Assembly: GCF_006345805.1 (NCBI RefSeq)
Contig: NW_021833150.1
Location: 1-29,195 of the forward strand
DNA from: Octopus sinensis
Taxonomy: Eukaryota
DNA length: 29,195 bases
Direction: 5' to 3'
Numbering within the stretch: the first letter of the stretch is position 1; every line of letters starts with the position of its first letter. The position numbers and the translations under genes are program-made. Positions 3,320 to 29,195 of the stretch are shown here, piece by piece. The notes under the pieces are model-generated. The model made no database searches, was not told the origin of the DNA, and was given only the letters and a program-made list of their open reading frames with translations.

Positions 3320-4008
3320 ATTTATTATATAGAAGGAGCTTCTACAGGACTAGAACTGTTTCATTCAAGAGAAATCTTCAGAAGCTGGTTAACAAGAATT
3401 GTATTGGCATTATACATTTAGGCAGGTTTAAAGGGGTGTTGGTGGGGACTTTTTGGGGGTAGGCATAGCGCAAAATATCATACTTGGGGGAGTGGTCAAG
3501 GAGTCAGTGTTAAATTAGATAGAAGAATAAATAAAGAAAATAAAAAAAAAAATAAAAAAATATATATATATATATAAAAAGAGGGGGGAATAGAGTTTTA
3601 GGTAAGTAAGCAGATTCTCACTTACACCTATGCACATATGTATACATATATACACACGCATACAAACATATGTACATATACATACACACATACATACACA
3701 CACATATATATATATACATATATATACACTTACACATACATATACATATCTACACATACACCTATATGTATACATACACACACTCACATGCATACACGTA
3801 TACACACATGTATATATACACACACACACGACCACACATACATATACACACAGAAAAATATATATACACATACACACACATATCTCACATACACGCATAC
3901 ACACACGAATCCACACACACACATGCACACACAGCACACTAGTCCCATATACACATATATACACATACACATATATACACACACATACATATACATACAC
4001 ATACAATA

Positions 4009-4040
<32 letters not shown>

Positions 4041-4456
4041 ATATATATATACATATATATATATATATACATACACACATATGTGTACCTATGCATACCT
4101 ACACATACACACATATATATATATATATATACACATACAAGTACAGACCCATCCCCTAATTTTAATTTTATTATCTTCGTTTATTACTTTTGTTATCTTT
4201 GGCCGCTTGGTCACAAACATCTTGGCTATGACAGCCAGTCCATTTATCTGTCTACTGGAAAACAAGCACTCATTCACTCACGCACACTCTTTAGCACGTA
4301 CACTCACTCATTCGTACACTCATACACATACACGCACGCACGCGTTATATTCATACATACATACATCCACATACATTCACGTATATACACATACGTACGC
4401 GCTACCTACAGATTCATGTCTACACTCTTAGAAGGCAAGTCTATACATATACACCA
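3320..4456 (+). repeat. Left arm of ~1.1 kb inverted repeat
   Basis: Reverse complement matches 7356-8472, including unique blocks (agaaggagcttctacaggac; gtaagcagattctcactt; gtacagacccatcccc; ctcttagaaggcaagtc). Confidence 0.9.
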
Positions 4457-4560: not shown

Positions 4561-4799
4561 ATATACATATATATACACACTCACATATATATACACATAC
4601 ATACATACACATACATACATACAACACATATATACACATATACACACTATACACATATATACACACATACACATACATACATATACACACATACACATAC
4701 ATACGTATACATACATACATACATCCATACATCCATACATACATACATTTATTTTTATACACATACACACACCCACATACATACATAATATACGCGCAT

Positions 4800-7250: not shown

Positions 7251-7410
7251 TCAATCTGGTTGCCGGGTAGGTCTATAGTTCTTGTAGTTCGCATACTTCT
7301 TATGCATACAATTTGGGGAGTGTTCTGAGATTTTGTTAAGGAGAGGGCCTTTGGCTGGTGTATATGTATAGACTTGCCTTCTAAGAGTGTAGACATGAAT
7401 CTGTAGGTAC
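7251..7410 (-). mobile_element. Possible Penelope-like element remnant (C-terminus of GIY-YIG endonuclease region)
   Basis: LLNKISEHSPNCMHKKY, preceded by a frameshifted TLLEGKSIHI, resembles the LCLxEKxxI...LLNKRSExxxxCRHxxK C-terminal motif of Penelope-like ORFs as I recall it. Short and degraded. Confidence 0.4.
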
Positions 7411-7741
7411 GCGTACGTATGTGTATATACGTGAATGTATGTGGATGTATGTATGTATGAATATAACGCGTGCGTGCGTGTATGTGTATGAGTGTACGAA
7501 TGAGTGAGTGTACGTGCTAAAGAGTGTGCGTGAGTGAATGAGTGCTTGTTTTCCAGTAGACAGATAAATGGACTGGCTGTCATAGCCAAGATGTTTGTGA
7601 CCAAGCGGCCAAAGATAACAAAAGTAATAAACGAAGATAATAAAATTAAAATTAGGGGATGGGTCTGTACTTGTATGTGTATATATATATATATATATGT
7701 GTGTATGTGTAGGTATGCATAGGTACACATATGTGTGTATG

Positions 7742-7801
<60 letters not shown>

Positions 7802-8472
7802 TATATGTATGTGTATGTATATGTATGTGTGTGTATATATGTGTGTATGTGTATATATGTGTATATAGGGACTAGTGTGCTGTGTGTGCATGTGTGTGTG
7901 TGGATTCGTGTGTGTATGCGTGTATGTGAGTATGTGTGTGTATGTGTATATATATTTTTCTGTGTGTATATGTATGTGTGGTCGTGTGTGTGTGTATATA
8001 TACATGTGTGTATACGTGTATGCATGTGAGTGTGTGTATGTATACATATAGGTGTATGTAGATAGTATATGTATGTGTAAGTGTAATATATGTATATATA
8101 TATGTGTGTGTGTATGTATGTGTGTATGTAATGTACATATGTTTGTATGCTGTGTATATATGTATACATATGTGCATAGGTATAAGTGAGAATCTGCTTA
8201 CTTACCTAAAACTCTATTCCCCCCCTCTTTTTATATATATATATATATTTTTATTTTTTTTTTTTATTTTCTTTATTTATTCTTCTATCTAATTTAACAC
8301 TGACTCCTTGACCACTCCCCCCAGTATGATATTTTGCGCTATGCCTACCCCCAAAAAGTCCCCCACCTGCCTAAATGTATAAATGCCAATACAATTTTGT
8401 TAACCGGCTCCTGAAGATTTCTCTTGAATGAAACAGTTCTAGTCCTGTAGAAGCTCCTTCTATATAATAAAT
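7356..8472 (-). repeat. Right arm of ~1.1 kb inverted repeat
   Basis: Reverse-complement match to 3320-4456, with a ~17-nt indel and a few substitutions. Confidence 0.9.
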
Positions 8473-8645: not shown

Positions 8646-9462
8646 TATACATTTCTTGCATCTAAAATATAGAAACTTCAGGTGTCCTGTACTTACTGCG
8701 GTTGATTTCTCTTCTATCTTTCTGGTCCTTGCATCGAAATGAAGAATCGGGATGGTCAACACGAGACCCAGTCCAAATTATGAAGAAGAAAAGGAAACCC
8801 GCTGCGAAATGACCCGCCACACCTTAGCGATTTCCATTGCGGTTTTCGGTCGTCCGTGCAGCCTGTTATTTTCGTTTGGTTTAATGATAAATCTGAAGTT
8901 GATGTAAGCTGGAGTTTATAAGTGTGAGCTTCTCGCTTTGGGATCGTAACTGAAAATGTTAACGTCTGATTCCGGCTTTTTTATATTTTTCACCCCCTCC
9001 ACAACCCAACCCCGCCGAAAATCTAATCTTAAATTCAGGAACCAATCAGATTGATATTACAATAATTGTGGGTGTCACCTTTTAAATGACACCTTTTGTG
9101 ATTGGATTGGAGATGATCCACGATTAACACAGAACAGTCAGCAGAATATTTTACTGACTTCAGCACAAATTTGTAAACTGAAAAACAATGCCTATTTGTT
9201 GGAGAATTCTTATTTATTTATTTCTTAATGTTTACTTCTTTATTTTTGCGAAACTGCTGTAATATTCAAGTAGGGGACTACATTGTCCGTTCAACATCTG
9301 TGCAGACTGTAACTGCAAAGATTTATTTAATGCAGTCTGGTGTTTTTATTGGTTAGTTCATAACAAACATGATGTTAAAGATTATTCCATTTTATTTACA
9401 CTGAATCTTAATAAAATATTTCTGCTGACGACAAATTTATGTTTGTCAAAATGTCTTCTGTG

Positions 9463-9590: not shown

Positions 9591-10042
9591 TGTTTAGTAT
9601 CATACATTTTATAATTTGTTAGAATTCTGGTATTCCAACATGCAGGACGCCGAGAACAGCCGGGTGGGGGCCTCACTGTATATGAGTCGTCGTCGGTATT
9701 GACTGTGTACCGAATGACTAATCTGTAGCGAGCGACACTGACTGAAAGAGATTTATTATTCAAGCCACAGATGACTTTCGCATGATTTTATTTTAGATTA
9801 CAACGGTTACAACGCTCCCGCACGTGGCTACCTGCCCTCAACAGTGGCACCATTGGGATTGGGGATGTACTAGATCTGGTTAGCGTGAATCCTAGCTGGG
9901 ACCCTAACATGTCCTACTACCCTGCGTCAGGTTAGATCTGGGAATATTAGTGGGTAAAAGGTGCTTCCACATCCCTCAAATCCCAGGAATATTCGTACCA
10001 TGTTTTCCCACTCCCGGATGCAGTTTGTGTACGTATATATTA

Positions 10043-10065
10043 GTGTGTGTGTGTGTGTGTATGTG

Positions 10066-10104
<39 letters not shown>

Positions 10105-10125
10105 TGTGTGTGTGCGTGTGTTTGA
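10043..10125. repeat. (TG)n microsatellite
   Basis: Direct reading. Confidence 0.95.
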
Positions 10126-12877
10126 GTGTATCTCTGTATTTCTCTGTGTCTCTGTGTATCTGTATATGTCTATGTCTGTGTGTGTATCAGGTCATCCCAT
10201 AAGTTCTGTCCGATTTTACTGTTTTTAAAATTGAATGAAATTTAATAGTTTTTCAGATGTCTAATGGAATTTTAAAAATATTTTTATGCATTTGTGTATT
10301 AACTAATTAAATGATAGAATTAAACTTTCTTTGATTGAAACCCATTCTAACATGGAAGTATCCAAAGGCCATTTGAGCACAAAAGTTCTTCAAACACTCA
10401 ATCCATTTCTGGCCAATACACATAGCTTCTCCACAAAAATTTCATTCTTAAAATCCACGGGTGAACAATGTGAATTTCTTTTAAAATTCATTTCTGTAAT
10501 GTGACCGGTTCTTCGATTTTTTGTGGGTACATTCGCATATTGTCTAAAATCAGAATCCGTGTTGCGTTCTGCCAAACGCATATTTATTTTTCTAATTTCA
10601 ACAGTCAGGGATCACATTTTTCACTTCTGTATTACAACTGGACAACCTCCATAACGTTTTGACAAAGTCTATTTCTAGGTGAATTCCATAATTCGAACAG
10701 CACCTATCGGAGAAATATTTATTAAAAGAGAACGCATTCTATGCCTCTCGAACGTAGCTACGATTCTCATTTCTCATTTCTCATCAGTTGTACTAACAAT
10801 TGATGTTACTTCTCAAATGTTTTTTATTGCTGTTTTTGCTGTTTCTGTAATTCCAACGGCTGTTGTCTTTATCTTTATTGCTTTTGCTGATTATGTTGAT
10901 GTAAATAAATTACCGAGGCTAGTAAAGCTCTCATGTGAAGAGACAAATCGGTCCGGTATGAGCTTCGAATAACTTCGTCGCTGAAAATGTTATGACGTAG
11001 TTATACACGTCCGGTGTATAATGGTATTAAACAAATAAATTGTTGGTTGTGACTATCTAAAAGTGACCTATCGCAGAAATATATGTCAACACAAAACGGA
11101 CTATGCGCTACTCGAACGTAAGTCCGATACCCAGCATGCAATGTTCCATAAACGATTGTTGAACTAACACCACCAACTGTCACTCCCTATTCATTCAATT
11201 CCTGTTTACTATAGCCACTTCCTCCACCTTCGGTCACATGGGGCTGTTCAGGACTCTCCAATGACAGTCCGTGATTCAAGTCGGATGTTGGTATTATCCC
11301 CGAATAAGTGAACAGCAAATAGACTCGGAGTGCTGACCTGTTTGGTAGTCTCAAACATTCCTTAAACCACCTTTTCTCGCACCCATTCGCCAGAATGTGA
11401 GCAATGCAATGACTGAAGTGTGCTGCCCAGTCACTCGGGATGCTGCTAAATATCCCCATTATCATAGAAGATGAAGTAACCAAAATCCTTCCATGCCACC
11501 TATGACTTAACAATTACAACCTCCCAGCTTTCAAAGCTTCAATCATTCATTAATTTTCCATTGCCCTCCATGTACCGTTCCAAGAATCCAAGATGATCCT
11601 GAATGTAAATTTGCTTTGAGTGGATAAACCGTTCTGTTGTACTAACACCAGTGGCACAGACGAAGTGTAGACAACCAGAAAACCAATTCCACTGTAGGAT
11701 TATTTTTCATACGACTTTAGCTTATTGAAAGATGTTCAAACAACAATTCGTAATCCTTCAATCCCATCGATCAAGAGTCTTTCGCCCAAAGTTGTTCAAT
11801 CAACGATGACTCAACTGAAGGAATTTGTCCTTTGACAGGATTGTTTATCGTCCTGTAGCTTCCATTCTTGATTGCGTTGAAGGCCCAGTCCCTGACGGTC
11901 CGACTTTGCAAAAGGTTCATTGGGTTAAGCATACACACATGTATACCTTTAAAGTTGATTCCTATTATAAATGTCTAAATACATGCATTTTCTTAATGGC
12001 AAGCTTATGGCACTCAATTACTTGCATGAAAGACGTTGTGTCTCCCAAATATCCATCTTCTTCTACTTTATCTAAGGAATATTCTACACTAACACATAGT
12101 GATGTTTCTTTTTGGATGTGGTGTAACAGTCTCAACATATCACACAGTTTACACAGAGTAACTTTGCTTAGCCTCATTATGTTTTTACGTCCTTTTGCTG
12201 TATTTACTCTGCTTTCTATGTATGTAGTAAGTGTTGTAAAGCAAATCTTTGCTCCAAATTACCATTTTTCTGCTTTTCAGTGAGTGAATTATTCGATTTC
12301 GATACTCCCAGGTGATTCCATTCCTGATTGTTGTGCATCAGTGTTTAGGAAATGGTGCAAAGTGTGAGGGTTACGTGTTCCGGTTATGAGGATGTCAACT
12401 AATCTTGTGGTGGGTCACGAGTTTGTATAGATACAGGTAAAAACTAAATAGGTGGTGAGAGGATTACTACTTACATTCCTGGGAAAAATGATCTAACCAT
12501 CATATATTTCTATGATATTACTTCAAGAGGGGTTTATTGAGATTTAAGACAGAACAAAATACAGTTAAACGAAATACAATTTTATTTCCACATTTTAGTT
12601 TTATGAACTGAGCCTTATACAATGTTTACCTAGAATTATTCCCTCAGATTTGCATTATTCTATAAGCATAATTCTCACATTTTCTGGGGCCGATTTTCTT
12701 TCTATTATAATATTTTTCTGTTAACTAGTAGCGCAGAGTATTTTAACGATTATATAACTTCGATAAAATATTATCAAACAGAATTTAAAATGTCTATATT
12801 GTTTTATGATATTATATTATGTCTTGTAATTGGTTAACATAAGTTTTCATAGAGAAGCAAATTCAAATATATTCGCT

Positions 12878-13374
12878 TCAATATTTACTGCACACAACGC
12901 AGGTTAATACGCGACCATAGACATACGGTGGACATGGCAATGAACCACAAATTCCCCTCACAAAATATAATGAAGCTCCATCTTCGTCTCTGTAACCCGC
13001 TGGATCAGCTTCTGGTGCATAATCCACACACACATATTCATGTCTGCCCTTATGACTATAATGCTCGGTCATCAAATATCCTGAATACTCAGCTGTCCAA
13101 CCAGGGTAACACTTTGTCCTGGCTGGTAACATCATAACAACAGCAGGTTGTCGTGTCAAACAGACAGCGCACGGAACGTTGTGATCATGAAGTGATTCAG
13201 CGTTAGCAAAAGAAAAGTATTTTTTCGCAGAGGAATATGTTTGATATTCACTGCCATATATGTGACCCCAATGTGTTACTCCTCCATTGTAATTTGCCCA
13301 AATGGGGTCGTTAGGTAGACATAAGAGATTACTTCCGCCGCCTGTTTCGTTCCACGCTGTTCCACCAACCACAC
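12878..13374 (-). CDS. Terminal coding exon of a short-chain collagen C4-like (spongin short-chain collagen / collagen IV NC1-related) protein
   Basis: Acceptor ttctag|GT at 13375/13374, phase 1. Encodes GVVGG...GGGSNLLCLPNDP...IYGSEY...LHDHNVPCAVC...MLPARTKCYPGWTAEYSGYLM...YVCVD...CGSLPCPPY...LTCVVCSKY*, the Cys pattern of this family. TGA at 12878-12880; AATAAA on minus at ~12581-12586. Confidence 0.9.
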
Positions 13375-14717
13375 CTAGAATTGGTAAGAAAATATCAAAT
13401 AAATAAGATGTTAAGTAAAGTGAAATAAGAAAAACGTGGATTAAAACAAATCCTTGAAAAGGAACTTTCAATTTTAAATTGGTGATTATAAATAGACACA
13501 CATCCGAGTGTGCGTGTGTGTGTGTGTGTGTGTGATTGAGTTTATGTGTGTGTGTGTATAAGTGTGTGTGTGTGTAAAGTGTGTGTGTGTCTTTGTGTCT
13601 ACGTGTGTTCGCGTGTGCGTGTGTCTATGTGTTTGAACATTCACTATGTTTACGTGTGTAGGTTTTTTGTATACAAACTAGTATCGATGCGAGTGTAAGC
13701 TGTGTTGCTCAATGAATGTTTGTGCATGAGTTAAGAACTGTACGTGTCTATGATTTATATGTATATATGTTGTAGGTGTACGCCAACGTGTTTGTGTAGG
13801 TAATATTTATGAATATGTCTAGATACATGGCTGTAGATGGTTGTGTGCAGATGTCAAAAGAGTGCGAAGGGAAGGCCGTTACGTCACGCATTTCCTCTAA
13901 AATGGAAAAAGACGATTTTGTTCAGATTTTAGCGGAGATAAAATCGAAGAACGATACAAGGAATTTTTAACCAATATAAAATAGAAGAACAGGTGAGGTG
14001 CAGAGTATTGTTGGTCGATGGGTAGTTAAAAGTTATTTAACAGAACATCCTGCACAGCGTAGCTAAAACTCTCGGCTAGTCGTGGACAGGTCGCGTGAAG
14101 ATACACGTTGTGGTCACGTTGGCTTTATTTGCTTCATCACTGGGGTTATTTTACGTCTTAAGGAAAGTGAGTGGAGAAAGGATTATAAGGTTCAGTTTAG
14201 GCTGAATTGGGAAACCTTTAAGGAAACCGTTAAGGGTTCGGTTATAGACAGATAAAATCTGTTCCATCGTATTTCAAGCAAAAACAAATCTCGTATAAAG
14301 AAAGAAAAGTTGATGGGGAAGTGGTGGAAAATAGTGTCTTCTGAGTGGAAAGTTCAGAATTGCCTTACCATGAGGAACTAGCGAGATTAAGTGGTGGAAT
14401 AGTGCGTAGTGAATGCATACAGTCCTTCGGTAACTATATTCTGTGGTTGGGTTCATGGGGGTACTTTCGATGATATCCTGTTCGTGTGATCATTCTTGAC
14501 GGCATTTATACTTCGGCTATGACCAAATAAATTCAACGGGGAAAGTAGTTTTGTGTAATCTCAAGAGAATCTATAATCGCCGTTTAAAACGTGATATACT
14601 ATAATAGGAAAAACGTTTGTGTAGATCAGAAAGAAGGAGGGAGAGGGAGAGAGGAAGAGAAAGAGAGAGAGAGAAAGAAAGTAATAGAGAGAGAGATTAG
14701 AAACAAAATATACTAAC

Positions 14718-17467: not shown

Positions 17468-20400
17468 TTATACTTCGGTTATGACCAAATAAATTCAAGG
17501 GAGGAAGGAAGAAAAGAAGGAAGGAATGAAAGGAGGAATGAAGGACGGAAGGAAGGAAGGAAGGGGTTGGAGGAAGAAAGGAACGAACGAACGAACTAAT
17601 GTTATGTAGGACAGAGGATTTAATGTGTTAAGAAAGAAAGAATGAAAGAAAGGAAGAAACAAACAAACAAACAAACCAAAGGGTTTGAAAATTCTTTCTC
17701 CTATGAACGTAAAGCTGATTCCGAGAAATAGTCCCCTACGCCTGGGGGTGAATGTATACTTTTATTTACAGGTAAAGATTTGCATGATTCATCACTAATT
17801 CATTTCTCAGCCGAATTCAATGCGGTTTTTTAGCAATGATGATCGAGTCTTGAGATAAATTAATTCAAGGTTGGAGCATCAAATAAAAGGTTTGATCAAA
17901 AATTAAATAAAAGGCTAGATCAAAAATGGAGGGTAAGGCGAAAATTTCAATTTGAAACAACATATATTGGTTATCTTTAAAGGAATGTATATAATTAGAT
18001 TTAGAAGAATGTGTTCATTGCGAAGGAACTTTTGGTAAAGATTATTTGTTTGGAAAAAGTTGTATGAATTTAAAAGTGACGAAGAAAATGGTAAGTAACC
18101 AGAAAAGTTGATTTTTCATCAAGACATCTGAGCTATTGTTAAAGAAGACGGTACAGTAGCTACGTTCAAATGGAAGTGCTATATGGGATGAAATTTATGA
18201 CGTAAACTCGCCAAGAAAATGTCTTACAAAAGTGGTGTGGCTTTAAGGGATCAAGAAAATGGAATCATTGTCAAAAAATTAAAATATTTTTGTTATTTTA
18301 ATATATTTTGTGTTATGATATGCATAATCTGATTCCATTGATCACTTAGTTTGAATGTAGACAGCGCCTAAATGGATTCTCTGTAGCCGCTGGAAGCCGC
18401 TTCTTTCCGTATCGTGGTCATAGAGCTCTATGAAACGTATCTTATGGTGAAAGCTTTGTCAAAGATATTAGCTACAAAGTCATCTATGTGGCTTTAAGTA
18501 AGGAAAGGGTACAGGTGATAATTTTAAGAAATCAAGATATTTATTTCTTTTTCAGAGAAGAAATACATTATTTGAAGTGGAATGAAATCGTTCAATGAGA
18601 AAAATATGTTTAGGAAAAGCCTGTCTAAAATTATTTAACAGTAATGAAATTTATTTTTGCGATTTCATATTTTTATTATTTGCTTTTATGCATTAGAATA
18701 TATACATATAAAAACCATATTGAAATACAAATTTAACTTAAATTTAATTAGAATATAATATTATTTCAAAATAAAAATTCTATAGAAATGTATTCATTTG
18801 TGAGAGATATGCTGCTATTAATTGATTTTTAATTTTAGGTGCAAAGAGAATTTAACATTTGTCTTTAAAATATCTGTATTTAAAAGCTATTTTGTATAAT
18901 ATCATTTTTTAAATTAGAAAGGTGAATATCATTAATTATAATGAAAGAAGTGATGCCTTTAAACATATTTCTAGAATATTCTTTAGTATAGGACCTGCAA
19001 ATGTACAGAACACTAAACCAGAGACACGGCGAAACACGAAGGTAAAAGACATTAACTATTGGTGTTGAAGTTAAAATTTCGTGACTGAAATACTACGACC
19101 GAAATTATGCGAATTGCAAGGGATCTCTTGAGCAACGTTATTCGACTGCGATGGTTAATCAGAGATCAGCAAATGTCTCCAGTTCGAACTTCTGATTCTC
19201 TGCATTGAGAGATGACAGCTCAGGTACGATGTACATGCGATTTCAATTCCACAGTAAAAGAATCACAAGACGAATTCTTCAATCTGGATCAGCCGGCGAG
19301 GGATCTGGGGATAGACCAGAAAAGAGATGGGTAGATAATACCCATCGGCTCAGATTGGTTACGCTTGTCAACTAAACCGGTAATCTTAATAACAATTGCT
19401 TCCCTCTGGAATGGCACTCGAAGACAGGTGCCTGGTTTCTCTACAACCACCAGACTCGCAGAATTACTGAGCAACAACAATATGTCGATGGTTTTATTGA
19501 TTCGGTTTCTTACTACAACATAGGGTAAACCCTACAATTTCTTATTGCTTACACTAATATTAGATCTGATATGAAAATATTTCTTACATACTTTTTTCCA
19601 GATTATAGTCTTACGTGTACACAAAATTGCTTTCATTTATTGACGTGGTCCTGAATATAAACTCATATAAACATAGTTAATAACATAACATAAAAGGGTT
19701 ACATTTTCAAATTAATTTAGGCATCCGAATTAAAGTTGTGTATTTCGTTGAGCAGATTATGTAAAAAATGAAAAACGAATGGAATCCGCAAAAGCTTGGA
19801 AGCCAGTAGATGAGGAGACACATTTAAATGAATTTAGCTAAAAGAGATTGAATCATAATATTTTATAATATTTAATCCGGTATTAATATGTTTTTATCTT
19901 GCACGATATAAAATTAGTTCTTACTTGGCGTGTGAACAACTTTGTCATCCAGAGATTTCTTGGAAAGGAAACGGTTCTGTGAAAAAATAGAAATAACATC
20001 ATAGAAATAGATTTTCAGAAAATTCATCAATGTTTAGAATTTAAAGCTAAGCAATACAATAATGGCACTTTTGGACAGCTTCTTTTGAAGATGCAGGAGA
20101 CAACTTCATTGTTAATTCCACCAAATTGTCATCATTGTGTTACATCTTGGTGGCTTACCTCTTTCTTGTCTCCTCTGTACATCGGGTACTCCTTTATTTC
20201 ATGCTTTTATATGGCAAAAACGAACCCATCACAATGAGAGTTAATTAAGCCTAACGAACGAAAACACGCTCGGAGAATGTTGCAAATGCATTTAGAAAAA
20301 TAAATCTTCCAGTTTGTAAATCTACAAACAGGTGGGTAGATATCTCAGACCCGATTCATTTCGCTTTCTACGTAACCTACTTTTAAAAAATATATTTACC

Positions 20401-22113: not shown

Positions 22114-22279
22114 ATTGTCATCTGCAATACTGAATATTTCAAGATAATGATCAAATTCCGCGTAGTCGCGCCTTGTCTTTATCCTTTCGAGGTCCATGAA
22201 TTCAGAACCTGTTCATCACTGGCCTGTAAGGAATCGATCTACAACTTCCTGACATTTATAACCACGAGTGAATGAAACT

Positions 22280-22346
22280 ATCCAATCAATCGATCTTTCT
22301 ATGTATCTATCTATCAATCTATCTATCTATCTATCTATCTATCTAC

Positions 22347-22395
<49 letters not shown>

Positions 22396-22468
22396 AAACT
22401 CTCAATCAGTCTGTCTACATATCTACCAATATATCTATATATCTATCTATCTATCTATCTATCTATCA

Positions 22469-22499
<31 letters not shown>

Positions 22500-22545
22500 A
22501 AACACTCAGTCAGGCTGTCCACCTATCTACCAATATATCTATTTA
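22280..22545. repeat. (TCTA)n microsatellite
   Basis: Direct reading. Confidence 0.9.
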
Positions 22546-22675
22546 TCAAACGATCGATAGTTCTGTCTATCGATCTCTCTAAACACACATTAAAAATCGT
22601 CCATCCATTAATATGTTAGTAGATATATATACGAAACGTAATTTTATATATAGTTGTGTGTAAGCGTATGTATGT

Positions 22676-22700
22676 ATAATATATATAAATAATATATATA

Positions 22701-22753
<53 letters not shown>

Positions 22754-22755
22754 TA
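22676..22755. repeat. (TA)n flank of the ribozyme array
   Basis: Direct reading. Confidence 0.9.
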
Positions 22756-23048
22756 GTTATCCGTAATAATGAAGGTTGAAATTAATTAATTTGGAATAAT
22801 TATCATATTACACCAAGTAGTCTTCGGCATGTAAAAGCCTCATTCGAGGAAAATTTAAGTAATACAAGCAATAAGGGTTTAGCAACGAATTGCCTTACCA
22901 CATACCGAATTAGAAATAGCAGTCAAAGGGTTATAGCTATTTCTTCTACTAAAAAGGGAGATCTCAGTAAAAACAGCAATTGGAAGGCTGACACAAACAG
23001 GTAAGTGAGAATGAATTAACTGCAATCTATCAAACATTTTTAAAGTTA

Positions 23049-23155
23049 TCTACGGACGTACGTTTCGAAATCAAGTTTTTAGGAAAGCATAAGAATTAAA
23101 TATTAAATATTAAATAATTCTATCTTACCGAAACTTCTTTTCTCTTCAGCGTAGA
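23049..23155 (-). ncRNA. Type I hammerhead ribozyme, unit 1 (intact core)
   Basis: Minus strand reads UCUACG-CUGAAGA-G...C-GAAA-CGUACG-UC-CGUAGA: 6-bp helix I, conserved core, GUC cleavage triplet. Confidence 0.8.
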
Positions 23156-23645
23156 ATACTATAATCATAAATGATTATATATTGAATTTTGAGATACTAG
23201 GAGGCACCAACTCAACTCAGTATCAGAGCGAGCTAGAATCCGCAACTAGTATCCACCGAATTCAATTTGTGAATGAAACGATTGTGTCAACAGCCCCTTC
23301 CACCCGCGTGTAGCCAAAACAGATGCTGTGGACATCTACTGAATAAAATATGGTTATCCGTAATAATGAAGGGTGAAATTAATTAATTTGGAATATTATC
23401 AATTACACCAAGTAGTCTTCGGCATGTAAAAGCCTCATTCGAGGAAAATTTAAGTAATACTAAGCAATAAGGGTTTAGCAACGAATTGCCTTACCACATA
23501 CCGAATTTAGAAATAGCAGTCAAAGGGTTATAGCTATTTCTTCTACTAAAAAGGGAGATCTCAGTAAAAACAGCAATTGGAAGGCTGACACAAACAGGTA
23601 AGAGAGAATGAATTAACTGCAATCTATCAAACATTTTTAAAGTTA

Positions 23646-23752
23646 TCTACGGACGTACGTTTCGAAATCAAGTTTTTAGGAAAGCATAAGAATTAAATAT
23701 TAAATATTAAATAATTCTATCTTACCGAGAACTTCTTTTCTCTTCAGCGAGA
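23646..23752 (-). ncRNA. Type I hammerhead ribozyme, unit 2 (helix I damaged)
   Basis: Core intact, but cgtagaatac is changed to cgagatac, shortening helix I; mutation or sequence error. Confidence 0.6.
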
Positions 23753-24244
23753 TACTATAATCATAAATGATTATATATTGAATTTTGAGATACTAGGAGG
23801 CACCAACTCAACTCAGTATCAGAGCGAGCTAGAATCCGCAACTAGTATCACCGAATTCAAATTTGTGAATGAAACGATTGTGTCAACAGCCCCTTCCCAC
23901 CCGCGTGTAGCCAAAACAAGATGCTGTGGTCATCTACTGAGATAAAATATGGTTATCCGTAATAATGAAGGGTGAAATTAATTATTTGGAATAATTATCA
24001 ATTACACCAAGTAGTCTTCGGCATGTAAAAGCCTCATTCGAGGAAAATTTAAGTAATACTAAGCAATAAGGGTTTAGCAACGAATTGCCTTACCACATAC
24101 CGAATTTAGAAATAGCAGTCAAAAGGTTATAGCTATTTCTTCTACTAAAAAGGGAGATCTCAGTAAAAACAGCAATTGGAAGGCTGACACAAACAGGTAA
24201 GTGAGAATGAATTAACTGCAATCTATCAAACATTTTTAAAGTTA

Positions 24245-24351
24245 TCTACGGACGTACGTTTCGAAATCAAGTTTTTAGGAAAGCATAAGAATTAAATATT
24301 AAATATTAAATAATTCTATCTTACCGAAACTTCTTTTCTCTTCAGCGTAGA
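24245..24351 (-). ncRNA. Type I hammerhead ribozyme, unit 3 (intact core)
   Basis: Same motif as unit 1. Confidence 0.8.
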
Positions 24352-24845
24352 ATACTATAATCATAAGATTATATATTGAATTTTGAGATACTAGGAGGCA
24401 CCAACTCAACTCAGTATCAGAGCGAGCTAGAATCCGCAACTAGTATCACCGAATTCAAATTTGTGAATGAAACGATTGTGTCAACACAGCCCCTTCCCAC
24501 CCGCGTGTAGCCAAAACAAGATGCTGTGGACATCTACTGAGATAAAATATGGTTATCCGTAATAATGAAGGGTGAAATTAATTAATTTGGAATAATTATC
24601 AATTACACCAAGTAGTCTTCGGCATGTAAAAGCCTCATTCGAGGAAAATTTAAGTAATACTAAGCAATAAGGGTTTAGCAACGAATTGCCTTACCACATA
24701 CCGAATTTAGAAATAGCAGTCAAAGGGTTATAGCTATTTCTTCTACTAAAAAGGGAGATCTCAGTAAAAACAGCAATTGGAAGGCTGACACAAACAGGTA
24801 AGAGAGAATGAATTAACTGCAATCTATCAAACATTTTTAAAGTTA

Positions 24846-24945
24846 TCTACGGACGTACGTTTCGAAATCAAGTTTTTAGGAAAGCATAAGAATTAAATAT
24901 TAAATAATTCTATCTTACCGAAACTTCTTTTCTCTTCAGCGTAGA
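24846..24945 (-). ncRNA. Type I hammerhead ribozyme, unit 4 (intact core, helix II loop 7 nt shorter)
   Basis: Same motif; one taaatat repeat is missing from the apical loop of helix II. Confidence 0.8.
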
Positions 24946-25446
24946 ATACTATAATCATAAATGATTATATATTGAATTTTGAGATACTAGGAGGCACCAA
25001 CTCAACTCAGTATCAGAGCGAGCTAGAATCCGCAACTAGTATCACCGAATTCAATTTGTGAATGAAACGATTGTGTCAACAGCCCCTTCCACCGCCCCCC
25101 CACCCGCGTGTAGCCAAAACAAGATGCTGTGGTCATCTACTGAGATAAAATATGGTTATCCGTAATAATGAAGGGTGAAATTAATTAATTTGGAATAATT
25201 ATCAATTACACCAAGTAGTCTTCGGCATGTAAAAGCCTCATTCGAGGAAAATTTAAGTAATCTAAGCAATAAGGGTTTAGCAACGAATTGCCTTACCACA
25301 TACCGAATTTAGAAATAGCAGTCAAAAGGTTATAGCTATTTCTTCTACTAAAAAGGGAGATCTCAGTAAAAACAGCAATTGGAAGGCTGACACAAACAGG
25401 TAAGAGAGAATGAATTAACTGCAATCTATCAACATTTTTAAAGTTA

Positions 25447-25552
25447 TCTACGGACGTACGTTTCGAAATCAAGTTTTTAGGAAAGCATAAGAATTAAATA
25501 TTAAATTTTAATAATTCTATCTTACCGAAACTTCTTTTCTCTTCAGCGTAGA
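25447..25552 (-). ncRNA. Type I hammerhead ribozyme, unit 5 (intact core)
   Basis: Same motif as unit 1. Confidence 0.8.
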
Positions 25553-25814
25553 ATACTATAATCATAAATGATTATATATTGAATTTTGAGATACTAGAGG
25601 CACCAACTCAACTCAGTATCAGAGCGAGCTAGAATCCGCAACTAGTATCACCGAATTCAAATTTGTGAATGAAACGATTGTGTCAACAGCCCCTTCCCAC
25701 TCGCGTGATTGAATTCGGTGATACTAGTTGCGGATTCTATCGCTCTGATACTGAGTTGAGTTGTGCCTCCTAGTATCTCAAAATTCAATATATAATCATT
25801 TATGATTATAGTAT

Positions 25815-25920
25815 TCTACGCTAAGAGAAAAAAGAGTTTCGGTAAGATAGAATTATTTAATATTTAATATTAATTCTTATGCTTTCCTAAAAACTTGATT
25901 TCGAAACGTACGTCCGTAGA
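25815..25920 (+). ncRNA. Type I hammerhead ribozyme, inverted unit A (core lesion)
   Basis: CTAAGA instead of CTGAAGA (G5 missing); rest intact; mutation or sequence error. Confidence 0.5.
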
Positions 25921-26408
25921 TAACTTTAAAAATGTTTGATAGATTGCAGTTAATTCATTCTCTCTTACCTGTTTGTCAGCCTTCCAATTGTGTTTTTTAC
26001 TGGATCTCGCTTTTTAGTAGAAGAAATAGCTATAACCCTTTCACTGCTATTTCTAATTCGGTATGTGGTAAGCAATTCGTTGCTAAACCCTTATTGCTTA
26101 GTATTACTTAAATTTTCCTCGAATGAGGCTTTTACATGCCGAAGACTACTTGGTGTAATTGATAATTATTCCAAATTAATTAATTTCACCCTTCATTATT
26201 ACGGATAACCATATTTTATCTCAGTAGATGACAACAGCATCTTGTTTTGGCTACACGCGGGTGGGAAGGGGCTGTTGACACAATCGTTTCATTCACAAAT
26301 TTGAATTCGGTGATACTAGTTGCGGATTCTAGCTCGCTCTGATACTGAGTTGAGTTGGTGCCTCCTAGTATCTCAAAATTCAATATATAATCATTATGAT
26401 TATAGTAT

Positions 26409-26515
26409 TCTACGCTGAAGAGAAAAGAAGTTTCGGTAAGATAGAATTATTTAATATTTAATATTTAATTCTTATGCTTTCCTAAAAACTTGATTTCGAA
26501 ACGTACGTCCGTAGA
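26409..26515 (+). ncRNA. Type I hammerhead ribozyme, inverted unit B (intact core)
   Basis: tctacg(26409-14) CTGAAGA(26415-21) helix II(26422-26497) GAAA(26498-501) cgtacg TC cgtaga; predicted cleavage after C26509. Confidence 0.85.
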
Positions 26516-27011
26516 TAACTTTAAAAATGTTTGATAGATTGCAGTTAATTCATTCTCACTTACCTGTTTGTGTCAGCCTTCCAATTGCTGTTTTTACTGA
26601 GATCTCCCTTTTTAGTAGAAGAAATAGCTATAACCCTTTGACTGCTATTTCTAAATTCGGTATGTGGTAAGGCAATTCGTTGCTAAACCCTTATTGCTTA
26701 GTATTACTTAAATTTTCCTCGAATGAGGCTTTTACATGCCGAAGACTACTTGTGGTGTAATTGATAATTATTCCAAATTAATTAATTTCACCCTTCATTA
26801 TTACGGATAACCATATTTTATCTCAGTAGATGACCACAGCATCTTGTTTGGGCTACACGCGGGTGGGAAGGGGCTGTTGACACAATCGTTTCATTCACAA
26901 ATTTGAATTCGGTGATACTAGTTGCGGATTCTAGCTCGCTCTGATACTGAGTTGAGTTGGTGCCTCCTAGTATCTCAAAATTCAATATATAATCATTTAT
27001 GATTATAGTAT

Positions 27012-27118
27012 TCTACGCTGAAGAAAAAAGAAGTTTCGGTAAGATAGAATTATTTAATATTTAATATTTAATTCTTATGCTTTCCTAAAAACTTGATTTC
27101 GAAACGTACGTCCGTAGA
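27012..27118 (+). ncRNA. Type I hammerhead ribozyme, inverted unit C (helix II closing pair G>A)
   Basis: Core intact; the base after CTGAAGA is A, so the G10.1-C11.1 pair is lost. Confidence 0.65.
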
Positions 27119-27304
27119 TAACTTTAAAAATGTTTGATAGATTGCAGTTAATTCATTCTCTCTTACCTGTTTGTGTCAGCCTTCCAATTGCTGTTTTTAC
27201 TGAGATCTCCCTTTTTAGTAGAAGAAATAGCTATAACCCTTTGACTGCTATTTCTCAATTCGGTATGTGGTAAGGCAATTCGTTGCTAAACCCTTATTGC
27301 TTAG

Positions 27305-27306
<2 letters not shown>

Positions 27307-27349
<43 letters not shown>

Positions 27350-27399
27350 GAGAGAGAGAGAGAGATATGTATGTATGTATGTATACAGATATATATAAA

Positions 27400-27587: not shown

Positions 27588-27980
27588 TACTAGCATTATC
27601 GCCCGGCGTTGCTCGGGTTGTAAGGGAATAACTATATAACATTTTTAGAGAGTTATAGCCAAAAATAGCAAAAAAATGCATTAGAAATTGAAAAAAATTA
27701 AGGTAAATTTTTTTTTAAATTGTTGACACATCGTAGATATTTTTAGAGAGTTATTTCCCTTATATAAAAGCGAAAAAAATGCATTAAAATGGAAAAATAT
27801 GATGGTAAATTTTTTTAAATCGTAGACTCATCGTAGACGCACGCTAATACCCAGAAGGGCTCGATATGAATCACGACTATAAGATACCCGCTTTTGGTTA
27901 AACTGCACCGCAAAATGTGGGAGTAGTTAGGAATCTAAATCGTAGGAGACAGACACACAACTTCACTCTTATATAAAGAT
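27588..27980 (+). mobile_element. Non-autonomous Helitron/Helentron-like element (Lep1/DINE-1 style)
   Basis: Begins tactagc...gcccggcgttgctcggg (5' subterminal palindrome cccg/cggg), has an internal direct duplication (atttttagagagttat...aaaaaaatgcatta) and ends agacagacacacaacttcactcttatataaagat, an architecture typical of these elements. Confidence 0.55.
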
Positions 27981-29195
27981 GCTTTTTTTTATTCAGTCAT
28001 AGAGTTAGATTTATGAAGGTCTTCAGTAGAAAATCCTTCGAATTCTGACTCGCGGCTTGATATAATGAAATTCGTATCCATTTTTTGTCAGAATTACAAA
28101 TTTTGAAAACACAGTGGGAAATGAGTAAAATTAAAACCAATTTACCTTTTCTGTCCGTCCGTGTGTCTTTGCAAATGTGTTGGAATGATAAGTAAGTTGT
28201 GATTTGGCGCCTTTTTTACTAATAACAAACACACACGTGTTTGTATGTAGTTGTATGTGTATGTAGTTGTATGTAGTTGTATATGTATGTGTATGCGTGT
28301 GTGTGAGGAATGACACACACACACTCACGCACGCACACATGTACATCAATGCTTTCGGAGTGATATTGTTAAAATATTGAGTTTTGTCGAATTTTGTCTT
28401 AATGGTGGTAAAATAGAAAGAAATTTTTTATGGCATCACCCACTGAAGTACTCTGAAAAATCTTAGGTAAACTCTAATTGAAGAAATTGTGTATTTATTT
28501 GTTTCTGTTTGCTGTGTTTTTTTATTTTTTGAGTAGTGGTTTAAATACTTTCACTTTAGTCTTCCTCAATCACTCTGTCGCTATTTACTTTCATTTTATT
28601 CGTCGCACACTGTGTGTGGTGCGTTTGCGTGTGGTGAAAACCAGACTAAGAAAAGCATTTGACACACACACCAGAATGTGAGTTTTCTGTAAATTTTGCT
28701 TAATTGGAGTTTAAATTTTAAAAACTGGACCTGGCATGACGCGATGCATTGTACTCTTAAAAATGCTAGGTAAATTGTAATTGAAGAAATCCTATATTGT
28801 AGATTTGTATAACTCCCAAAGGGAGGCAGATAAAATCTGCCTTTTATAATAAGAGATATATATATGTATATATATCTATACATATATGTATATATGTATG
28901 TATATGTGTATATAACACGAATACTTTACCTCAACCGGTCCAGCTCTCTTTAATATTATAGCAGAATACGTTAAAGCGAAAACAGATTCCATAAAATTCA
29001 AAATTTCTAAGGACAAATTTTCCCCCCAAAACTCTTCGACCAACCTCCAACACCCGGATATGTCTCCAACATTAAAAAGTCTTATGACTGAGATGGGAAT
29101 CAGATTCTAAACTGCTTCACCAGTTGGTGCTATTAAGTTATACATAGCCTGGGCCTATACTGGCTGAAATATATAACAATTGTGTGTGTGCATGT

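Follow-up and report, generated by a model that had tools for sequence, protein, structure and literature searches.

The window analysed here, positions 1–29,195 of the octopus contig NW_021833150.1, raises the question of what kind of sequence occupies positions 22756–27304, where about 7.6 units of a 601-nt consensus repeat with a hammerhead ribozyme motif are located, and how this array came to interrupt a (TA)n microsatellite. The array is best read as a cephalopod addition to the known class of metazoan non-LTR (long terminal repeat) retrozymes, apparently unreported in cephalopods, and we consider it likely that it represents a non-autonomous, non-coding retroelement of this type in the octopus genome.

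A direct-repeat search gave start-to-start spacings of 594–607 bp, in agreement with the original prediction, made from the sequence alone, of a repeat of about 600 bp at 22756–27306. With unit boundaries set at the predicted ribozyme cleavage sites there are six full units of 595–603 nt and four partial ones, and the full units are 97.6–99.7% identical when gaps are ignored. The array was not reported by TRF (Tandem Repeats Finder) because the longest period allowed was 500. The unit has a GC content of 34% and is non-coding, as had been proposed, the longest open frame on either of the two strands being 64 codons. Eight ribozyme positions spaced by about 600 nt were found, five on the minus strand (cleavage C at 23055, 23652, 24251, 24852 and 25453) and three on the plus strand (25914, 26509 and 27112). 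The arrangement is not the tandem satellite first described; instead two opposed arms meet head-to-head, with the following parts:

22756..25707, minus strand: left arm, about 4.9 units, with its 5' end (25707) at unit position 345
22756–22746, minus strand: 3' end of the left arm, fading into (TA)n at unit position ~299–310
25707..25709, no strand: head-to-head junction of two 5'-truncated arms, with a filler of at most 1 nt (A25708)
25709..27304, plus strand: right arm, about 2.7 units, with its 5' end (25709) at unit position 392
27304, plus strand: 3' end of the right arm, joining (TA)n at unit position ~195–204

The left arm is about 2.95 kb and the right arm 1.6 kb, and the two carry different variants. 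Both inner ends are thus 5'-truncated and directly abutting. Each outer end is a 3' end in the sense of the RNA and falls inside the unit, in an A/T-rich stretch with a few bases of microhomology to (TA)n. Differences between units are mostly private 1-nt indels. Four substitution sites are common to non-adjacent units (positions noted are 49, 127 and 322), and positions 127 and 322 alternate along the minus arm, with units M1 and M3 differing from M2 and M4, a pattern that may reflect either a dimeric higher-order repeat or heterogeneity of the template.

The consensus ribozyme of 107 nt reads UCUACG-CUGAAGA-G(76-nt helix II)C-GAAA-CGUACG-U-C/CGUAGA, where the slash marks the predicted cut, and all eight copies contain GAAACGTACGTCCGTAGA. 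Judged from the sequence the consensus is a canonical type I hammerhead, with every conserved core position, A15.1-U16.1 and the GUC triplet present. The earlier type I assignment therefore holds, together with its 6-bp helix I, its GUC triplet and its palindromic helix III with a 2-nt loop. Helix I is open-ended (UCUACG/CGUAGA) and continues into a 2x2 internal loop, and helix II is a closed 76-nt stem with 4 bp beside the core followed by another 2x2 internal loop (-13.8 kcal/mol, z = -2.5 against shuffles). Helix III consists of ACG/CGU around its loop and lies within the perfect 8-nt palindrome ACGUACGU. The distances of the internal loops from the core, 6 and 4 bp, correspond to the positions of loops 1 and 2 in canonical metazoan hammerheads, in which helix I has 6 bp and helix II 4 bp before the loops (PMC4209133), and one may speculate that the two internal loops make a tertiary contact.

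The conserved core (CUGAAGA ... GAAA, U16.1) is found in seven of the eight copies, the remaining one being without G5. The G10.1-C11.1 pair is present in the five intact copies and also in the copy at 23652, which is damaged in helix I, but it is lost at 27112 (G10.1A) and disturbed at 25914 by the G5 deletion. Five copies are intact and three are damaged. The number of intact units is the one originally proposed, with minus-strand cleavage C at 23055, 24251, 24852 and 25453 and a plus-strand one at 26509, and the cut predicted after C26509 is correct for the copy at 26409–26515. It had also been stated that the full motif is carried by all eight units, which is true of these five and not of the copies at 25914, 23652 and 27112. 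The individual copies are:

23049..23155, minus strand: intact hammerhead, identical to the consensus, cleavage C 23055
23646..23753, minus strand: damaged hammerhead, helix I 5' strand AUCUCG (2-nt deletion) and a 1-nt insertion in helix II, nominal site 23652
24245..24351, minus strand: intact hammerhead, identical to the consensus, cleavage C 24251
24846..24945, minus strand: hammerhead whose core is intact and whose helix II has lost 7 nt of its distal loop, cleavage C 24852
25447..25552, minus strand: intact hammerhead with two small distal-loop changes in helix II, cleavage C the complement of 25453
25815..25920, plus strand: dead hammerhead copy that has lost G5 (CUAAGA) and is disturbed at the helix II base, nominal site after C25914
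26409..26515, plus strand: intact type I hammerhead, cut predicted after C26509
27012..27118, plus strand: probably impaired hammerhead, G10.1 changed to A and G10.1-C11.1 lost, site after C27112

Helix III is predicted by folding to be unable to close within one copy, indicating a dimer-type ribozyme. Two separate copies cofold with -49.6 kcal/mol, compared to 2 x -18.6 kcal/mol for the monomers, which is a dimeric architecture, and for a 742-nt transcript in which two consecutive ribozymes are spaced by 600 nt the unconstrained minimum-energy fold is a double hammerhead. In this tandem transcript the palindrome-palindrome pairs have probabilities of 0.84–0.9996 and the cores are unpaired, and each helix I pairs the 5' strand of one copy with the 3' strand of the other, which is the correct topology. 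Both calculations agree with the dimer-type helix III that had been suggested. The monomer folds with -157 kcal/mol in the ribozyme sense (z = -6.7 against shuffles) and with -123.3 kcal/mol in antisense (z = -2.05), and by this asymmetry the structured molecule should be the sense transcript. Retrozyme RNAs have been described as highly self-paired (PMC7229834, PMC7761336).

A generic type I descriptor was run over both strands of the whole window, 58 kb. It asked for CUGANGA, for GAAA located 6–150 nt downstream and closed by two pairs, for 2 bp or more in helix III, for UH and for 4 bp or more in helix I. The five intact copies are its only matches. With first-order Markov nulls of the window there were 0.06 matches per null, and none of 200 nulls had a match with helix I of at least 6 bp and helix III of at least 3 bp, while nulls of array composition gave 0.016 matches per 4.5 kb. 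The fair figure is the one per unit, because all copies descend from one sequence, and it amounts to about 0.002 for the loose descriptor and about 0.0003 at the observed motif quality.

The position of the array was examined by comparison with two related octopus loci. A short-chain collagen C4-like gene has its last exon in an open reading frame (ORF) at 12878–13501 on the minus strand. The best matches of this exon are in O. vulgaris (87%) and O. sinensis (84%), which places the window in an Octopus genome. The loci of these best-matching proteins, called L005 (O. vulgaris) and L006 (O. sinensis), may be orthologues or paralogues of the window locus. To the left of the array, window 22359–22736 aligns to L005 11893–11526 and window 22432–22754 to L006 37702–37374, and to the right, window 28857–29195 aligns to L005 10847–10509 and window 28856–29195 to L006 37126–36793. 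Although both flanks are collinear, no match to the unit sequence is found in L005 or L006. At the site the (TA)n-rich tract of L006 is about 330 bp long and uninterrupted, and L005 has the same tract together with a tRNA-derived SINE (short interspersed nuclear element) at ~11115–11530. By this sequence comparison the array is an insertion that interrupted an ancestral (TA)n microsatellite, whether the loci are orthologous or paralogous, because L005 and L006 have only the (TA)n tract at the site and no unit. The two halves of the target are:

22667..22755, no strand: left target, (TA)n microsatellite with collinear (TA)n in both L005 and L006
27305..27589, no strand: right target, (TA)n-rich tract with the stretch GTATGTATGTATGTATACAGATATATATAAA in common with O. 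vulgaris

The units differ by 0.3–2.4% among themselves and the flanks differ from L005 and L006 by about 4–21%, mostly 7–12%, and the insertion, or the last homogenisation of the units, should therefore be comparatively young. In L005 exon 1 of the O. vulgaris gene is located at 10001–10144 and exon 2 at 14401–14457, with the site at ~10850–11530 in intron 1. Exons 2–4 are found in the window at 19982–19926, 14790–14716 and 13375–12881 on the minus strand, and exon 1 is expected just beyond it. By collinearity the array is probably located in intron 1 of the collagen C4-like gene, and the five-copy arm shares the sense of this gene.

The layout of the array, with tandem units, inverted 5'-truncated arms and an AT-rich (TA)n target, is by analogy consistent with the insertion signature of Penelope-like elements (PLEs), whose insertions show partial tandems, an inverted 5'-truncated copy at the 5' end and a bias for (TA)n (PMC8557442). 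The protein of the PLE Poseidon, the one protein of this kind that has been characterised biochemically, prefers AT-rich DNA in vitro, cuts and elongates the top as well as the bottom strand, and begins reverse transcription at internal positions of the RNA (PMC11167929). Priming from both 3'-OH ends of one break would give a left arm of minus sense and a right arm of plus sense with the 3' ends outward, as seen here. Target-site duplications are unreadable inside the microsatellite at the array ends, and no 30–40-bp 'tail' extension of the PLE kind is recognisable there. Penelope-clade PLEs have been annotated in O. vulgaris (PMC13282606), indicating a plausible helper within the genus, and retrozymes co-occur with PLEs and resemble the PLE pseudo-LTRs, pLTRs (PMC7229834; bioRxiv 10.64898/2026.07.22.740005).

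The known systems closest to the octopus array are the metazoan non-LTR retrozymes of Acropora millepora, Mytilus galloprovincialis and axolotl (PMC7229834, PMC7761336), which are alike in having tandem non-coding units with one type I hammerhead each, a low GC content (34% here, under 45–50% reported), a highly self-paired sense RNA and no LTR, primer binding site (PBS) or polypurine tract (PPT), and in occurring in a genus that also carries PLEs. The octopus unit is 601 nt compared to 170–400 nt in the classic retrozymes (PMC7229834), and the original prediction had taken it to be larger than usual. This size argument is weak because the unit falls inside the range of 51–972 bp given for retrozyme consensus lengths in a vertebrate survey (bioRxiv 10.64898/2026.07.22.740005). 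Further differences are the helix II of 76 nt with internal loops, whereas metazoan retrozymes have about 4 bp and a loop, and the dimer-type ribozyme, whereas the described invertebrate retrozymes are mostly monomer-cleaving.

Satellite 2 of newts and salamanders and the HHR_Amex1 repeats of axolotl also have a type I hammerhead whose helix III is palindromic and very weak, so that cleavage takes two copies within a multimeric transcript, but there is no sequence relationship to the octopus unit. The amphibian units are 330–350 bp with conserved contacts between loops 1 and 2, in contrast to the 601-nt octopus unit, where 2x2 internal loops stand in place of the amphibian loops, 6 bp from the core in helix I and 4 bp in helix II. 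The schistosome repeat Sm-alpha is alike in having a type I hammerhead within a short non-coding repeated retroelement of an invertebrate. Sm-alpha is SINE-like and has a Pol III-type head. No tRNA-like sequence was found in the window by ARAGORN, and a SINE-like hammerhead repeat of the Sm-alpha type was rejected, as this program found no tRNA-derived head. The plant LTR retrozymes, with a type III hammerhead, LTRs of about 350 bp, PBS, PPT and a GC content above 55%, were likewise rejected, since the octopus ribozyme is of type I and the array has no LTRs and 34% GC.

A second relationship is to the minimal hammerheads (min-HHRs) in the pLTRs of PLEs (PMC4209133), which have a 6-bp helix I, a larger-than-usual helix II, palindromic positions 15.2–16.2 giving a dimeric active form, and a conserved G10.1-C11.1 pair, and which occur as tandem and opposite-strand motif pairs. 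The octopus array differs from this context in having no ORF for a reverse transcriptase (RT) or endonuclease (EN). In addition the octopus helix III keeps a 3-bp stem, whereas the min-HHRs have none, the extra base found in them between positions 9 and 10.1 (PMC4209133) is missing, and helix II is 76 nt compared to 6–8 bp. With the PLE insertions (PMC8557442, PMC11167929) the array has in common the partial tandems, the inverted 5'-truncated copy, the AT-rich (TA)n target and the internal 3' ends, but the cargo is a 601-nt multimer and not a PLE.

No report of hammerhead repeats or retrozymes in octopus, or of a retrozyme in any cephalopod host, was found in the searchable literature. The giant squid genome paper lists 235 matches to Rfam Hammerhead_1 with no further analysis (PMC6962438). 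Exact look-ups of two unit-internal ORFs gave no match, nor did a homology search with all unit open frames concatenated, and the 18-nt 3' half of the ribozyme has no match in IMG/VR. Four matches of this 3' half in JGI/ENA metagenomes were discarded as chance, as no CUGANGA or helix I is located upstream of them.

How such an element could have been mobilised is suggested by these parallels. A multimeric transcript would be made, possibly via read-through of the host-gene intron, which is possible because the five-copy arm has the sense of the host gene. In the transcript neighbouring ribozymes would pair their palindromes, ACGUACGU with ACGUACGU, into an 8-bp helix III and form the double hammerhead. 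The monomers released by self-cleavage would fold into a molecule with extensive base pairing, a possible substrate for circularisation by a tRNA-type ligase (RtcB). The RT/GIY-YIG enzyme of a Penelope-like element would then copy the multimeric or circular RNA into the genome at a break in the AT-rich (TA)n tract, where both DNA strands would act as primers and synthesis would begin within the RNA at A/U-rich sites. Two multi-unit cDNAs would grow toward each other and be joined head-to-head. It is conceivable, but we regard it as doubtful, that the whole locus is the footprint of a single retrozyme integration by a Penelope-like enzyme, with both strands of one (TA)n break priming on a multimeric, possibly dimeric-circle, RNA. 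The original prediction of a retrozyme-like and PLE-mobilised family is strengthened in its first part, by the empty sites in L005 and L006, the (TA)n target and the head-to-head 5'-truncated arms, and is more tentative in the second, as it is for the self-cleaved and possibly circular RNAs of ~600 nt.

Several results weigh against the retrozyme interpretation or against its mobilisation by a PLE. Three of the eight ribozymes are damaged. The check by Rfam hammerhead models that had been recommended gave no match in the window, neither at gathering scores nor at E<=10. We infer that this is due to the 76-nt helix II and the near-absent helix III, and the negative has limited weight because two descriptor-matching candidate ribozymes in the O. 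sinensis locus L006 are likewise unreported by Rfam. The Rfam matches MIR3454 and mir-29 are spurious and correspond to a hairpin created by the inversion at the junction. Compensatory changes are found in none of 33 pairs among the eight copies, which are 97% identical per column, and a covariation signal would therefore be absent in either case. A second copy of the family was not found by pattern scans, exact ORF look-ups and a pseudo-ORF homology search, none of which searched cephalopod genomes or transcriptomes by nucleotide. The ORFs of the window were compared with Pfam, and the window, L005 and L006 were translated in six frames and scanned for motifs; neither a GIY-YIG nor a PLE RT motif turned up in the window or the ~68 kb of related octopus DNA (L005, L006). 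The only RT in the window belongs to a LINE (long interspersed nuclear element; RVT_1, YADD) present as fragments at 677–2777 on the minus strand, and LINE RTs were the only ones that these scans gave. From the literature, hammerhead cleavage is dispensable for PLE insertion in vitro (PMC11167929), and hammerheads of the minimal PLE type cleave poorly in vitro (PMC4209133). The 1-nt indels among the units may be assembly errors. Finally, simple rolling-circle copying of a single monomeric circle does not account for the variants common to non-adjacent units; with three informative sites, the alternating variants fit better with a multimeric transcript of heterogeneous make-up or with a dimeric template.

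Of the competing explanations the one that survives best, although we hold it to be unlikely, is that the array is a decaying satellite, an inert descendant of a hammerhead element that was expanded and inverted by DNA-level processes such as unequal crossing-over or replication fork switching, with no processed or circular RNA and no ongoing mobility. Disabling lesions in three of eight ribozymes, the lack of another copy in the searches mentioned and of covariation among the copies would all be expected from such a satellite, and alternating common variants are typical of higher-order satellite structure. Amplification in situ would however leave the origin of the first 601-nt unit unexplained, and the whole array is absent from the homologous loci of two Octopus genomes, with a clean break in the microsatellite. 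A decayed repeat also accounts poorly for five intact ribozymes and for a sense strand that is far more structured than the antisense, and the arm geometry is the one predicted by target-primed reverse transcription from both strands (PMC11167929).

Somewhat less probable still is that the insertion is real and the inversion an assembly artefact, so that the true locus is head-to-tail and long reads were mis-joined. Most of the differences between units are 1-nt indels of the kind found in error-prone long-read assemblies, the two plus-arm copies beside the junction are the most aberrant ones, a second inverted duplication is present in the window (3320–4456 against 8472–7356, 96.6% identity), and structures of the PLE type are known to trouble assemblies (PMC8557442). 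A foldback read would yield a perfect palindrome, whereas the arms are not mirror images and differ in 5' start (345 and 392), 3' end (~300 and ~195), length and variants, and both outer flanks are collinear with L005 and L006. A foldback chimera was therefore rejected as unlikely; an internal mis-assembly of the array is conceivable.

We find it very improbable that the array is part of an autonomous Penelope-like element, with stacked pLTRs, and not a separate retrozyme. The pLTRs do carry dimer-type minimal hammerheads in tandem or inverted arrangement (PMC4209133, PMC8557442), but tandem PLEs repeat every ~3–4 kb (PMC8557442, PMC4209133), as opposed to a period of 601 nt with no ORF over 64 codons, and neither an RT nor a GIY-YIG motif is found in or beside the array, the window's one RT being that of the LINE. 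The autonomous PLE class was rejected for the array on these grounds, as there is no ORF and no RT/EN. That the motif is a chance match in an AT-rich repeat is hardly credible, since the lack of an Rfam match and of covariation, and the descent of all copies from one ancestor sequence, which makes them a single observation, are outweighed by the low null rates per unit (~0.002 loose, ~0.0003 at motif quality), by the G10.1-C11.1 pair, palindromic helix III, stable helix II and double-hammerhead fold that lie outside the descriptor, and by a genomic context that is the one expected for such ribozymes.

As a non-LTR retrozyme the array would extend hammerhead retrozymes to cephalopods, with a hammerhead variant of a kind that would not be picked up by standard Rfam annotation. 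Small circular RNAs copied by PLE enzymes are held to be the means by which retrozymes spread. The link between retrozymes and PLEs rests mostly on co-occurrence and on the similarity to pLTRs. The present locus is a concrete test case, as it combines a young insertion, empty sites, an AT microsatellite and opposed 5'-truncated arms that match the behaviour of PLEs in vitro. If the single-event integration is true the locus would be direct genomic evidence for mobilisation of animal retrozymes, and it would define a cephalopod hammerhead variant missed by current covariance models. As the array is probably intronic, host transcripts could, speculatively, carry self-cleaving ribozymes and an inverted repeat of ~1.6 kb, and the latter might matter in a lineage known for heavy RNA editing.

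The (TA)n tract contains other sequences besides the array. At 27340–27366, beginning 35 nt past the array's right end, is a (GA)13 run that is specific to the window, as the homologous (TA)n of L005 and L006 has none. It could be filler from the insertion, a 'tail' of the PLE kind or a microsatellite with no relation to the array. A separate non-coding element of 1.27 kb at 27590–28856 lies in the same tract and is absent from both L005 and L006. Its first ~390 nt are a dispersed repeat with copies in L005 at 22192–22500 and 24396–24506, and it contains an internal direct duplication of ~100 nt. Together with the array and the O. vulgaris SINE this indicates at least three independent lineage-specific insertions in one microsatellite.

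Two candidate ribozymes were noted in L006. The first, at ~4700–4790 on the minus strand, reads GUUGUA-CUGACGA-(29-nt helix II)-GAAA-(4–5-bp helix III)-AUC/UGCAAC, resembles a canonical monomeric type I hammerhead and is single copy in the octopus DNA compared. The second, at ~35703–35800 on the plus strand, combines CUGAUGA and a helix II of ~57 nt with a helix III that is palindromic (ACAAUUGU), GUA as its site and 5 bp in helix I, and is located directly after a (GA)n run; its architecture is like that of the window ribozyme, and the sequence is unrelated.

Elsewhere in the window the LINE RT fragments at 677–2777 are 95.7% identical to a copy at 13577–16375 in L006. The inverted duplication at 3320–4456 and 7356–8472 gives a 1143-bp alignment with 96.6% identity and a 361-nt core that is 100% complementary; it flanks an AT/AC microsatellite of ~2.9 kb and could be a real foldback structure or an assembly problem. 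The short-chain collagen C4-like genes are tandemly duplicated, and an exon-1-like segment of the next paralogue is located at 8837–8697 on the minus strand.

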